A model generated the notes under the pieces. It made no database searches, was not told the DNA's origin, and saw nothing but the letters and a program-made list of their open reading frames with translations. DNA of 64,000 nt, from sequence record PQ287320.1; one strand, 5' to 3'. Position numbers and translations under genes: made by a program. Of the stretch, positions 41,756-44,604 are shown piece by piece (position 1 is the stretch's first letter; each line of letters starts with the position of its first letter).

Positions 41756-41854
41756 GAGCCAAGGACATCCCGTCATAGGTCCTGGCCCGGCTACGAGGTA
41801 GGCAGGCCGGTAAACCGGAACCTCTGAGGCGCGTCGCCAAGATACAGCAGACGC

Positions 41855-41889
41855 AAAGAAGGCCCCGATCTGGCGATCGGGCCTTCTTC
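41855..41889. terminator. Bidirectional intrinsic terminator
   Basis: aaagaaggccccgatc-tggc-gatcgggccttctt with A and T tracts on either side, between converging RNA units. Confidence 0.75.
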
Positions 41890-42020
41890 ACATCCTGGTG
41901 GTCGGCTAATAGCCTCGACAGGCCTAAGTCCTCCAGGTCAAGCCTGGAACCACCCGGCCTTGCGGGGTCCAAAAGGACCCATCACCATGCGCCTTGCACC
42001 CGAAGGCTCGGGGCGCGAAT

Positions 42021-42109
42021 TGGAGCTTCGGGAGGGACTCGAACCCTCATAGGTGTCACCACCAGCAGAGCTTTGCAGGCCCGCGCCTAACCTCTCGGAC
42101 CACCGAAGC
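42021..42109 (-). tRNA. tRNA-Cys(GCA) with a long variable arm
   Basis: GCUUCGG/CCGAAGC acceptor, U73, encoded CCA, loop CU-GCA-AA, T arm GAGGG-UUCGAGU-CCCUC, variable arm GGUG-GUGA-CACC. Confidence 0.85.
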
Positions 42110-42292
42110 ACAAAAGGACCTCGACGCCCGAAGGCCCGAGGTCCGATCCGTAACCAGGGGAGGGCCGTAGCTGTCCCTGACCCTGAACGACAGGTGGCGG
42201 GCTTGGTCGTCATCCCGTCAGGCTCGCGGCGCCGCTCGCCTGAACCGCCGATATGCCACGAGGGCAGTGATCCGCAGGTCCCCACAAATAGC

Positions 42293-42326
42293 AAAAAGGC
42301 CACGATCGCGAGGACCGTGGCCTTTT
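42293..42326 (-). terminator. Intrinsic terminator downstream of the GOLLD-like RNA
   Basis: aaaaggccacggtc-ctcgc-gatcgtggccttttt on the - strand. Confidence 0.8.
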
Positions 42327-42329
42327 CGT

Positions 42330-43205
42330 TTTCCGATGGGCTGAGACTACACCCATCAGCAATCCCGCTTCGAGGATTATTCCCCAGGTGCGACCCCAGG
42401 TATTCCCTCGACGTCCACCAGACCCCTTGCGGTAGTCCAGTCCGAGATCATCGCCGCCGTTCTTGCGCACCCCGAAGGGATTGCGGGTCTGGCGTTTGAC
42501 CCATCATGGCGAACTACTCGACAGTTCCTTCCCCGCTGGGCTTGCGACCCACTCACCGGCGCTAACCGGCTGACGAAGCTCTTCCTATCGACACCTCGCG
42601 GGCTTGCGACCCTTGAGATGACTCCGTTACCCGAAGGCCGGAGCATTTGGCGACTTACGTCCGCCACTGGACCAGTCTTTGCGTTTTTCATCGAAGCGGG
42701 GATTGAACCCGCGACCGACAGCTAGGATGGCTGTTGCACTACCACTGTGCTATTCGCAAACCCACCAAGACGTGCTGGTCCAGTTGTTTCCAGGGCTTTT
42801 GACCCCAGAAATGCAACACGCCTCATGTCTTTCGCCTTGCGGGCTACTCGACTGTCCTTCGGGACCTCTGTCTCATCCAACCCTTCGGCCAGACTGCCCA
42901 GCACCCCTTGGACTGAAGCAAAGCTCTTCACCGCGAAGTGTCGAACCCTGCAACCCAAACGGTTATCCGTACTCCTTGGATCGAGTTGCGTGGGTAGTCC
43001 GGTGGCGCCGGACTGGTGGTTAAAGCCTCAGAGTTACCCAGGCCCCACCTTGTCTCCCTCGATCTTCAGGTCTATCCCCTTTTGCAAGAGGCGGCCAGCT
43101 TCCCAGCCCGGACCCGTCGGCTTCCTCTGTCCTCTTGCGAGGTCGGGCGGCCTATGGGAGACCGTCCCTGTCACCCCGTCGCCGGGGCTTTCGTCGGAAG
43201 CGACG
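42330..43205 (-). ncRNA. GOLLD-like giant ornate RNA (~870 nt)
   Basis: - strand motifs match the GOLLD consensus as I recall it, in the expected order: GAGUAGCCCGCAAGGCGAAAG (42829-42849), GUGUUGCAUUUCUG (42806-42819), AGCACGUCUU, CCGGUUAGCGCCGG (42556-42569), CCGCAAUCCCUUCGGGGUG (42466-42486) and GUAGUCUCAGCCCA (42337-42350). Many GNRA and UUCG hairpins; own promoter and terminator; phage tRNA-cluster context. Confidence 0.8.
42688..42759 (-). pseudogene. Degenerate tRNA-like domain (UCC, Gly-like) embedded in the GOLLD-like RNA
   Basis: Intact D arm GCAC-AGUGGUA-GUGC, anticodon stem ACAGC/GCUGU and T arm GCGGG-UUCAAUC-CCCGC, but A33, a broken acceptor stem and no CCA. Confidence 0.7.
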
Positions 43206-43211
43206 ATCAGG

Positions 43212-43240
43212 GTTGTAGCCGGGCCGGATGTCGTCGTCAA
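43212..43240 (-). promoter_or_regulatory. Promoter of the GOLLD-like RNA: TTGACG-N15-GCTACAAC
   Basis: The -10 matches the Caulobacter housekeeping consensus GCTANAWC exactly; -35 is TTGACG. Confidence 0.8.
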
Positions 43241-43363
43241 CGACTTTTTCGTCCTTGATCGAACTTTTTCGACACTATCGCGCCAAGTGGTTGATTTCCG
43301 TGAAGCTTCCATCAGGGCCTCGCCTACGCGCGAAAGGAATGTCGTCCGTCGTGACGTTTTTTC

Positions 43364-43393
43364 TTGACAGCGGGCCAAAGGCTCTGCTAGAGG
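43364..43393 (+). promoter_or_regulatory. tmRNA operon promoter TTGACA-N16-GCTAGAGG
   Basis: Caulobacter-type -35/-10 directly upstream of the tmRNA acceptor piece. Confidence 0.7.
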
Positions 43394-43399
43394 AGGGGC

Positions 43400-43770
43400 A
43401 TCGTTGTAATTCGGACAACGGAACTGGCGGCAAGACAGGGGTGCGAATCCCCTCGCCTCCACCATCGACGCCCGGCGCTGGGAGTACGCGACTCCTGGGC
43501 AGGGAGTGTTACCCTGGCGGGCTGCGGCCCGAGCCAAAGGTAGCCGGGCGTCGTTGATGGGGGCGACTAGCTTTCGATTGGCGCTCGGGTCTGGAAGACG
43601 CAACGGTGGGTGACCTCCACATCGGCTTGCCGGTGATCGGGTCAGGCAACATTAAATGTCGCCGCCAATGACAACGACGTCGTGGCTTTCGCCTCGGCTC
43701 GTGAAGCCATCGCCGCCTAATAAGCGGTAGAGGAGCCCGCCGGGAGCTTGGCAACAGAATCCCGGCACCT
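43400..43770 (+). ncRNA. ssrA: Permuted two-piece (alphaproteobacterial-type) tmRNA
   Basis: Acceptor piece ends AGGGG-UGCGAAU-CCCCU-CGCCUCC-ACCA (43464). Coding piece starts GGGGGCG at 43559, giving a G3-U70 Ala identity pair. Tag ORF (V-A-)ANDNDVVAFASAREAIAA** at 43658/43664-43723. 3' GGGAGCUUGGCAACAGAAUCCC motif; helix-2 complementarity between the pieces. Confidence 0.95.
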
Positions 43771-43776
43771 TCTTGT

Positions 43777-43849
43777 GGGCGTCGCACCGTGATTTTCACC
43801 CGGTGTCCTAGCCGGTGGGCCTAGCCCTGGCGCGGCGCGACGCTCTCCA
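43777..43849 (+). other. 73-nt tRNA-sized element ending in UCCA (pseudo-tRNA or tRNA-like RNA)
   Basis: GGGCGUCGC/GCGACGCUC 9-bp closing stem, then U-CCA; internal hairpins; no canonical T loop. Confidence 0.45.
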
Positions 43850-43991
43850 AGACCCCTTTCGCAGGTGGGGACACGAAATAGGCGATCTGTCGGGAAAACC
43901 GATCACCAACCCCCGTGTCCCCATCTTCGAAAGGCGGTCTGGCCCTCCCCTCCTTTGGTGTCCTATCCAAGGGGCCGGGCCGCCTTCAGAA

Positions 43992-44070
43992 CGCGGGGTA
44001 GAGGAGTCCGGTTGTCCTCGTCTGGCTCATAACCAGAAGATCGTGGGTTCAAATCCCATCTCCGCACCCA
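43992..44070 (+). tRNA. tRNA-Met(CAU), initiator type
   Basis: CGCGGGG 5' end with a C1xA72 mismatch, UCUGG-CUCAUAA-CCAGA anticodon arm, GUGGG-UUCAAAU-CCCAU T arm, encoded CCA. Confidence 0.92.
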
Positions 44071-44530
44071 GGACCCGAACGCCGGGGGACACATCAGAAC
44101 GATGGCGTGACAAGCCCGGAGAGAACGGGCACTCCAGTCCGGGGTATGAGGCCGGACTAGCGGACGCCGTAGTGATAGCAGGCGTGACACCCGGAGATAG
44201 CGGGACCGATTTTCCAGGCTTCATGCCCGGCGTATAAGACCGCAGGCCTCGGCCATCGGGCAGTGTCAGGGGATGAGGCTAGTCCTCGGCCAACCACCTA
44301 GCGGTGGGGCCAGGGCATGGAGCTTGGAAAGTCGGTTCGGTACGGTGGCTCGACAGGTAAGGCATCGGCCTCATAAGCCGAGGGGCTCGTCCCCAATACT
44401 GGTTCAAATCCAGTTCGTACCTCCAAGCTCCAGAAGTGCGCTACGTCCGTATAGCTCGGCCAGTTCGTGCTCCGGGGTGCTTCAAGAAGGGTATGGCCAG
44501 AAATGGTATGTAATAAGCCCTCGCTTCTGT
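44071..44530 (+). ncRNA. Unassigned structured RNA region enclosing the CAU class-II tRNA
   Basis: Two copies of the ACGCC..GGCGTGAC-stem-GAGA module; hairpins agtccgg/ccggact and tgcccgg/tcgggca; an 11-bp inverted repeat clamping the tRNA; no credible ORF. Confidence 0.5.
44339..44425 (+). tRNA. tRNA(CAU) (Met or Ile2) with a long variable arm and U73
   Basis: GGUACGG/UCGUACC acceptor, UCGGC-CUCAUAA-GCCGA anticodon arm, variable arm GGGG-CUCGU-CCCC, T arm ACUGG-UUCAAAU-CCAGU, then U-CCA. Confidence 0.85.
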
Positions 44531-44545
44531 GACACAATATGACGC

Positions 44546-44573
44546 TTGACCGCCGGCGGTGGCTTGCTAAGCT
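44546..44573 (+). promoter_or_regulatory. Putative promoter TTGACC-N14-GCTAAGCT
   Basis: Caulobacter-like hexamers about 35 nt upstream of a terminator. Confidence 0.45.
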
Positions 44574-44604
44574 CTCCTCGTCGGGATCGTCCCGCGTCCT
44601 TCCC

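Follow-up and report, generated by a model that had tools for sequence, protein, structure and literature searches.

Here we present the gene for a GOLLD RNA in Caulobacter phage BL57, located on the minus strand of a 64,000-nucleotide (nt) stretch of the phage genome (record PQ287320.1), to which we refer throughout as the window. We put at about 80% the probability that the locus is a complete GOLLD RNA gene, with a transcription unit of its own and an integral tRNA-like module. What is new here is the full transcription unit, the membership of the 5' domain in the RNA, the recognition of the annotated coding sequence (CDS) BL57_146c as spurious, and the evidence for the tRNA-like module. 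To our knowledge, GOLLD has been without a known function since its description in 2009, though its cage structure has now been solved.

An earlier reading of the letters alone, hereafter the original prediction, had proposed a GOLLD-like RNA of an alphaproteobacterial phage at 42330-43205. The background on which it drew, namely that GOLLD RNAs have no known function, lie near phage tRNA genes and form cages visible by cryo-electron microscopy (cryo-EM), agrees with Kretsch et al. 2025. It left the strand unstated, which is minus, and missed the embedded tRNA-like element.

Identity of the locus

The stretch 42250-43300 of the window is 100% identical to Caulobacter phage BL57, an alphaproteobacterial phage as had been proposed, and matches 17 further phiCbK-like (Shapirovirus) records at 94-95% identity. 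Using cmscan with Rfam 15, the GOLLD family RF02032 was found on the minus strand at 42824..42338 with 169.7 bits (E 7e-46), in an alignment spanning model positions 1-416 of 416, i.e. the whole model. This is only ~20 bits over the Rfam gathering score of 150 bits; the orthologues score 165-171 bits with the same model. The GOLLD motifs noted in the original prediction are part of a whole-model match, and the covariance-model (CM) search that it had proposed as a check, and whose failure would have refuted it, gave a significant score. The G+C content of the RNA is 60%, against 65.5% for the whole window.

The GOLLDs of phiCbK, Karma, Magneto, Swift and Ccr2/5/10/29/32/34 are orthologues of the BL57 RNA, with the same 487-nt span of the 3' domain at the same genomic position. 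The 3' domains of 15 phiCbK-like records are already contained in a GOLLD alignment that Kretsch et al. (Nature 2025; PMC12286853, Supplementary File 3) obtained by searching GenBank phages with cmsearch; one of these, NC_019405.1:c102774-102288, is the corresponding 487-nt span. The same alignment has Mesorhizobium phage Cp1R7A-A1, Erythrobacter phage L02, the roseophages DSS3P8, V10, DSS3_MAL1 and MD18, and the mycobacteriophages PegLeg and Bongo, whose hosts are tractable. It lists 3' domains only and does not include BL57, and the phiCbK-like phages are not discussed by its authors. Because the 3' domains of the phiCbK group have already been published, the BL57 GOLLD adds a new orthologue to a family already known and is no discovery: the family assignment is public at the level of databases, and BL57 itself and the full-length unit are undescribed. 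Within the searched literature, no paper was found whose text brings up both GOLLD and either Caulobacter phages or phiCbK. Among the 11 GenBank records examined, the annotation at this place is a tRNA-Gly or a tRNA-Lys, to which BL57 adds a hypothetical CDS; a GOLLD RNA or other large RNA is annotated in none of the 11, and the nearby transfer-messenger RNA (tmRNA) is likewise unmarked.

In a tree of GOLLD 3' domains, the phiCbK group is sister to the Mesorhizobium phage, with the Sinorhizobium phage next. A composite pattern for this GOLLD subtype, scanned over a collection of 185,579 species genomes, was found on two contigs, both from alphaproteobacterial metagenome-assembled genomes (one Sandarakinorhabdus, one a "Rickettsiales" bin). 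With only these two contigs in the collection, the scan gives no evidence for resident prophage copies; the subtype is carried by phages and is no resident prophage element.

Organization of the conserved 3' domain

The first hairpin of the 3' domain (42767..42824, minus strand, as are all parts of the RNA given below) covers model positions 1-62, corresponds to P13/P14 in our own mapping, and carries the conserved UCAAAAG loop and the AGCACG motif. The variable linker J13/15 follows (42673..42766), holding the tRNA-like module and closing at its 3' end with the conserved AAACGCAAAGACUG motif. The core of the domain (42338..42672) consists of a long-range helix, two GGGUCGCAAGCCC hairpins and the 3' motif GUAGUCUCAGCC, the form taken here by the expected 3'-terminal GOLLD motif GUAnUCUCAgcC. 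There are few non-canonical pairs in the CM alignment, with 9/10 pairs formed in the long-range helix that encloses the multi-hairpin core. Two hairpins with the loops UUAGCG and UCGCAAG stand at the place expected and are candidates for the elements that, in GOLLD, provide the self-pairing kissing loops (L21a/L21b) and the L20-J13/15 bridge. Comparison of 10 phiCbK-like phages revealed a single variable column in the core (42635) and nine in the whole 487-nt 3' domain.

Repeats were also noticed within the RNA. The hairpin GGGUCGCAAGCCC is present at 42612-42600 and at 42550-42538, and the 17-nt ACAGUCGAGUAGCCCGC at the end of the 5' domain (42839-42855) repeats ACUGUCGAGUAGUUCGC of the 3' domain (42509-42525) with 82% identity. 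Both repeats may be structural modules or traces of an old internal duplication.

Predicted promoter, terminator and transcript boundaries

The GOLLD RNA is predicted to form an autonomous minus-strand transcription unit with a host-type, sigma-73-like promoter. The consensus of Caulobacter sigma-73 promoters is TTGACgS-N10-14-GCtANAWC, and both of its elements are present at a permitted spacing: a -35 element TTGACG (43235..43240), invariant in the 10 phiCbK-like phages, followed after 15 nt by the -10 element GCTACAAC at 43219..43212 (equally, TTGACGA, 14 nt, GCTACAAC). The -10 element matches GCTANAWC exactly, as the original prediction had stated; in other phiCbK-like phages it reads GCTAGAAC, a change limited to the N position. 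Searching both strands of the 64 kb for TTGAC-N14-18-GCTANAWC gave this single match, where shuffles predict 0.02. A scan of 41800-44600 for E. coli-type promoters found nothing, as expected of a Caulobacter -10 element, which does not resemble TATAAT.

The boundaries of the RNA were drawn from an alignment of ten phiCbK-like phages. The promoter spacer and flanks are strongly variable and the sequence upstream of 43208 is heavily diverged; from 43207 onward, 145 nt are nearly invariant, with one variable column. On the basis of this conservation footprint, the transcription start was placed at ~43205-43207. At the other end, RNA-type conservation stops at 42338 and a strong predicted intrinsic terminator comes next (42292..42328), beginning 9 nt past the last GOLLD motif and consisting of a 16-pair stem with 8 G-C pairs, then UUUUUG. 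In the phiCbK-like phages it is conserved apart from an indel in the loop and a single U/C substitution at 42302, within the 3' arm of the stem. A terminator scan of the minus strand found no second terminator-like site between 43207 and 42338. The RNA body is thus 870 nt, or ~915 nt for the primary transcript including the terminator, in agreement with the extent of ~870 nt and the terminator just past the 3' motif that had been predicted.

The 5' domain as part of the RNA

Upstream of the stretch covered by the Rfam model lies a domain of 383 nt (42825..43207), which we assign to the RNA from its conservation, folding and covariation. Its minimum free energy is -165 kcal/mol (z -2.9 versus dinucleotide shuffles), and in the alifold consensus, computed from seven distinct phiCbK-like sequences, there are 119 pairs, of which 6 carry compensatory double changes that set BL57 apart from the others. 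The differences of BL57 in this domain, ~35 in number, fall in two patches (43062-42976 and 42911-42855), and the remainder is nearly invariant. The patches diverge by roughly 20-25%, the rest of the RNA being ~99-100% identical to the phiCbK-like phages; they may be fast-evolving peripheral hairpins, perhaps exposed at the surface, or the product of recombination.

In a one-pass profile search with the 5' domain, relatives match only over the last 50-120 nt. After iteration, the last ~175 nt are collinear in nearly all of the ~50 related GOLLDs outside the phiCbK group, and six relatives, including Sinorhizobium phage Phosso, match over near full length. Iterated profile searches carry some risk of profile drift, against which both collinearity and covariation speak here. 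When the BL57 structure was mapped onto a clade alignment of ~57 related GOLLDs, 77.6% of cells were paired, versus 36-43% in slid controls with the partners shifted by 1-3 columns, and 39 pairs had double changes, versus 16-21 in the controls. Two helices, 42946-42937/42923-42932 and 42913-42903/42854-42865, show three to five pair types each.

Two other accounts of this upstream half were weighed. The first holds that GOLLD is the 487-nt 3' domain alone, preceded by a separate small RNA or an unstructured leader of 380 nt; this would fit the coverage of the Rfam model, which is limited to 42824..42338, and the single-pass similarity confined to the last 50-120 nt of the upstream part. We regard it as very improbable, given that neither a promoter match nor a terminator lies between the two halves, that conservation starts exactly at the predicted start, and that the homology found by the iterated search is clade-wide and collinear, with covarying helices reaching up to the start of the Rfam model. 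Moreover, a less conserved 5' region of ~420 nt is already known for GOLLDs (Kretsch et al. 2025, PMC12286853).

The second account is that of GenBank, in which the 5' half codes for the hypothetical protein BL57_146c: record PQ287320.1 annotates a 68-codon open reading frame (ORF) with a TTG start at 43034..43240 on the minus strand, across the promoter and the 5' domain. The frame, however, is broken by three stop codons in the orthologous stretch of all nine other phiCbK-like phages, despite almost identical DNA; a 1-nt deletion at 43208 precedes the stops in these nine. The start codon falls within the -35 element, the 68-residue product has no Pfam match, and the CDS is annotated in none of the other phiCbK-like records examined. 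The coding account is almost certainly wrong; by these comparisons, BL57_146c is a spurious call, and the GOLLD RNA encodes no protein. The sharp start of conservation, the lack of a conserved ORF and of an internal terminator, and the covarying helices together show that the 5' half belongs to the RNA.

With this domain included, BL57 resembles the cryo-EM-characterized env-38 GOLLD in having a conserved 3' domain, matched at full length, and a structured, less conserved 5' domain (383 nt versus ~420 nt; total length ~870 versus 833 nt). A variable linker after the first 3'-domain hairpin and a phage location next to tRNA genes are likewise shared with known GOLLDs. The linker of BL57 holds a tRNA-like module, whereas that of env-38 is a short disordered loop; BL57 also differs in its G+C-rich sequence and Caulobacter-type promoter. 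Unlike the phiCbK-group GOLLDs listed above, the BL57 RNA has its ~35, partly compensatory, changes in the two 5'-domain patches and a third allele of the module's anticodon loop.

The tRNA-like module of BL57

The element annotated as tRNA-Gly(UCC) (42687..42760) is an ARAGORN call within the GOLLD linker. The Rfam tRNA model matches it with 42.9 bits (threshold 29), over model positions 4-67 only. The D, anticodon and T arms of its cloverleaf are perfect in BL57. At the acceptor end, pairs 1-3 are U:G, UxU and GxA, and pairs are formed only from 4 to 7; the stem is followed by AAAAACGC, which belongs to the GOLLD linker motif, and CCA is not encoded. The anticodon loop CAUCCUA (42723..42729) is hypervariable and has a non-canonical A33 and U37. 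The BL57 module thus fails three defining features of a working tRNA: the acceptor stem, the U33 and purine 37 of the anticodon loop, and CCA. By contrast, the tRNA-Cys and the second tRNA-Met of the window have full acceptor stems and encoded CCA.

A helix flanking the module is tentatively proposed between UUUGCG (42755..42760) and CGCAAA (42683..42678). It covaries with UUCGC/GCGAA in a subclade of 13 members and is missing in other subclades; its mean length of 4.35, against a null of 4.00 (sd 0.12), is ~3 sd over shuffles. The helix competes with acceptor pairs 4-5 of the module.

The element could instead be a genuine tRNA, namely Gly-UCC in BL57 and Lys-CUU in phages of the Magneto type, the GOLLD RNA being its precursor or storage form from which it is freed by RNase P and 3' processing. 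Both ARAGORN and the Rfam tRNA model call a tRNA here, and CCA may be added post-transcriptionally. A review (PMC12990946, 2026) speaks of "inhibited storage" of an embedded tRNA-Phe in a Mycolicibacterium GOLLD. Against this stand, in BL57, the mismatches at pairs 2-71 and 3-70, the absent CCA, and the A at 33 and U at 37. The corresponding element of M. aubagnense has been termed a pseudo-tRNA, and a separate transcript of it was not detected (Behra et al. 2019). The wider family of modules bears on the same question.

The module in related phages

To place the BL57 module, IMG/VR was scanned for a T-loop followed by the GOLLD linker motif, and GOLLD 3' domains were confirmed by profile search. 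At least 57 IMG/VR viral contigs have both the module and a GOLLD 3' domain, nearly all full-length; the clade counts given here and below (52 modules, 45-tip tree, 57 loci) rest on the IMG/VR matches listed and on reference phages. Further phage GOLLDs have, at the same place, a module that agrees with that of BL57 in D arm, variable loop and T arm; it is read as Leu(CAG) in the Mesorhizobium phage, as Arg(UCU) in the Sinorhizobium and Phaeobacter phages and DSS3_MAL1, and as Glu(UUC) in the Erythrobacter phage. These modules align across phages irrespective of anticodon. The element is common to >50 phage GOLLDs, and that of BL57 is homologous to 52 others.

In the 52 modules, the D, anticodon and T stems are paired at 99.5%, 96.5% and 98.8%, and acceptor pairs 4-7 form in 92-96%, with pairs 1-3 in only 40-56%. 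Neither seven Watson-Crick acceptor pairs nor an encoded CCA was found in any of them (0/52 each), which argues against the genuine-tRNA account, since 83% of the free tRNAs on the same contigs encode CCA and 344 of 466 have 7/7 acceptor pairs with G-U counted. The Mesorhizobium "tRNA-Leu" module speaks in the same direction, being only 72 nt long and without the long variable arm of tRNA-Leu. The anticodon loop favours the account: most modules keep a canonical 7-nt loop, with U33 in 43/47 and A37 in 43/47 (free tRNAs have U33 in 480/487). From these comparisons, the module is a tRNA-shaped component that this GOLLD lineage has inherited, and no tRNA gene inserted into it.

Several further observations were made in these contigs. 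Sinorhizobium phage Phosso, a jumbo phage of 469 kb, has an unannotated GOLLD scoring 186.6 bits, whose module (positions 1499-1570 of the stretch analysed) is found by the Rfam tRNA model and not by ARAGORN. In Roseobacter phage DSS3P8 (positions 1530-1600 of its stretch), the D arm and acceptor of the module are lost and two hairpins are kept. Genes for tRNAs are very abundant on the viral contigs with this GOLLD subtype, with 621 ARAGORN tRNA calls over the 57 IMG/VR GOLLD loci, five reference phage loci and the window together.

Turnover of the anticodon

Of the nine columns of the 3' domain that vary among the phiCbK-like phages, five coincide with the five inner positions of the 7-nt anticodon loop. 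Three alleles occur: CAUCCUA in BL57; CGUCCUA in phiCbK, S2L, Ccr10 and Ccr29; and the canonical CUCUUAA in Magneto, Karma, Swift, RBC57 and Ccr5. More widely, the anticodon differs in 13/31 pairs of modules with <=4 body differences, versus 1/36 pairs of free tRNAs, in which the lone difference is synonymous. On a maximum-likelihood tree of 45 GOLLD 3' domains, made with the loop masked, at least 20 anticodon changes are required, and several well-supported sister pairs have unlike anticodons. The changes return again and again to a small set: GUU, UCU, UUU and CUU make up 81% of module anticodons and 10% of those of free tRNAs, in counts that are not phylogenetically independent.

These patterns bear in two ways on a genuine tRNA. 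AsnRS and LysRS read the anticodon, so switches among GUU, UUU and CUU could follow tRNA identity, as such an account would have it. Near-identical phages nevertheless share one module body with unlike anticodons, and this, with the acceptor ends described above, makes release of a functional tRNA from the GOLLD RNA a quite improbable explanation of the module.

The anticodon classes of the modules overlap with published targets of nucleases. PARIS AriB cuts tRNA-Lys(UUU) and tRNA-Asn(GUU), and PrrC and colicins D and E5 have been named as tRNA-depleting enzymes; these and VapC have been discussed alongside anticodon-loop mutations of phage tRNAs.

Probable cage assembly and a possible role of the module

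The env-38 GOLLD forms an RNA-only D7 14-mer nanocage by cryo-EM, with its linker disordered and inside the cage (Kretsch et al. 2025, PMC12286853). By homology, BL57 transcripts would probably assemble, protein-free, into a closed homo-oligomeric, 14-mer-like cage of ~4 MDa, capped by the 5' domains and with rings made of the 3' domains. The linker and its tRNA-like module would then face the lumen, with ~14 copies inside, or exposed once half-shells open. We rate this reading as probable and no more: the 3' domain is clearly homologous, but a GOLLD restricted to its 3' domain gave 8- to 12-mers, and BL57 has a G+C-rich sequence and a 74-nt insert.

As to function, it is conceivable that the RNA acts in the conflict between phage and host over translation. 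The many tethered tRNA mimics might capture or lure a host factor that acts on tRNAs, the most plausible candidate being an anticodon-loop nuclease, and such a decoy would spare the tRNA pool, which the phage also refills from its own tRNA genes. The module retains its elbow, its anticodon loop is canonical in most members, and its aminoacylation end is lost. A role as decoy or sponge for a tRNA-directed factor is speculative and on present evidence unlikely. The more specific proposal, that the module is neither a tRNA gene nor a relic but evolved as a decoy whose ~14 anticodon arms per cage mimic the Lys, Asn and Arg-UCU targets of nucleases, must be rated distinctly unlikely. Under it, the repeated switching of the loop, including the three alleles in near-identical phiCbK-like phages, would record an arms race with tRNA-targeting defences.

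A number of points weigh against the readings put forward here. In the searched literature, neither expression data nor an infection transcriptome of a phiCbK-like phage was found. The Streptococcus agalactiae GOLLD of the 3' domain only formed mainly 10-mers, and also 8- and 12-mers (PMC12990946), so the stoichiometry of a BL57 cage is uncertain. Inside a closed cage, the module would be less accessible to proteins, and the decoy idea is weaker for it. Many GOLLDs, env-38 among them, have no tRNA in the linker, and the GOLLD of DSS3P8 still scores at threshold (150.7 bits) with a module remnant; the core function of GOLLD therefore cannot depend on the module. The lack of U33 and of a purine at 37 in the BL57 loop could equally mean decay, and the anticodon counts lack phylogenetic independence. 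Finally, about a third of the modules reach 6-7 acceptor pairs when G-U is included, which favours a genuine tRNA, and some members may still be processed.

Comparison with other structured RNAs

A tRNA-shaped element in the same linker has been described in mycobacterial GOLLDs, which belong to another lineage and host phylum. In the passage of a review (PMC12990946) that cites Morgado et al. 2020, a tRNA-Phe is placed in J13/15 of the mycobacterial GOLLD, and in M. aubagnense the element was called a "pseudo tRNA" without a separate transcript (Behra et al. 2019). Module homology, loss of the outer pairs and CCA, and turnover of the anticodon were worked out here for the clade of alphaproteobacterial phages and IMG/VR contigs only.

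ROOL shares with GOLLD its carriage by phages and prophages, proximity to tRNA islands, an RNA-only nanocage and a disordered internal linker, but is unrelated in sequence and fold, and Rfam cmscan found no ROOL match in the window. A tRNA-shaped domain inside a larger RNA is also a feature of tmRNA and of viral tRNA-like structures. These retain an acceptor end that can be aminoacylated, and tmRNA has no anticodon arm. The GOLLD module, unlike tmRNA, has lost the acceptor end and kept the anticodon arm.

Genomic neighbourhood

A tRNA-Cys, two tRNA-Met genes and a tmRNA lie within 1.7 kb of the GOLLD gene. The tmRNA is of the two-piece (permuted) alphaproteobacterial type and is divergent from GOLLD, 165 nt upstream (43372-43811, plus strand); its tag peptide is VAANDNDVVAFASAREAIAA, a promoter-like TTGACA...GCTAGAGG stands directly upstream, near 43365, and the gene is unannotated in the BL57 and phiCbK stretches. 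The tmRNA stands beside GOLLD in phiCbK-like phages and roseophages. Among the matches listed and within the stretch fetched, it was found in only 3/57 IMG/VR GOLLD loci, and tmRNA adjacency was rejected as a general feature of GOLLD.

Between the GOLLD terminator and the tRNA-Cys lies an unannotated segment of 180 nt (42112-42291, minus strand), nearly invariant in seven phiCbK-like phages, that closes with a terminator-like hairpin of its own (42137..42116). It folds no better than shuffles (z -0.8) and has no Rfam family match. The tRNA-Cys(GCA) (42021-42109, minus strand) is an unusual, class-II-like tRNA of 89 nt with a long extra arm, a low tRNA score (33.8-35.1 bits), a full acceptor stem and encoded CCA; BL57 differs from six other phages at seven columns, in the regions of the D and anticodon arms. 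Both tRNA-Met(CAT) genes are long: that at 43992-44070 (plus strand) has 79 nt and, in our reading of the sequence, a C1xA72 mismatch like initiator tRNAs, and that at 44339-44425 (plus strand) has 87 nt, an extra arm and encoded CCA.

Implications

The original prediction had valued the locus as a cleanly delimited, GC-rich example in a tractable host system. The boundaries hold and the G+C content is 60%; the example is less new than was implied, and its value is limited to that extent, the membership of these 3' domains being already in a published alignment and GOLLDs of mycobacteriophages with tractable hosts being at hand.

A practical consequence concerns annotation, in that the GenBank records of these phages mark the module as tRNA-Gly or tRNA-Lys, the 11 examined omit the GOLLD RNA and the tmRNA, and that of BL57 has the spurious ORF over the RNA.

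What the locus adds is a complete, cleanly bounded GOLLD in a phage family with a well-developed host, Caulobacter crescentus CB15/NA1000. Eighteen sequenced relatives between them provide three natural anticodon-loop alleles and, in the 5' domain, two patches that evolve fast, which ease the design of deletion, allele-swap and assembly experiments and let the alternatives of tRNA, stored precursor and mimic be tested directly. If the decoy reading were true, it would give GOLLD, or at least this clade, a first function: protecting translation during infection.

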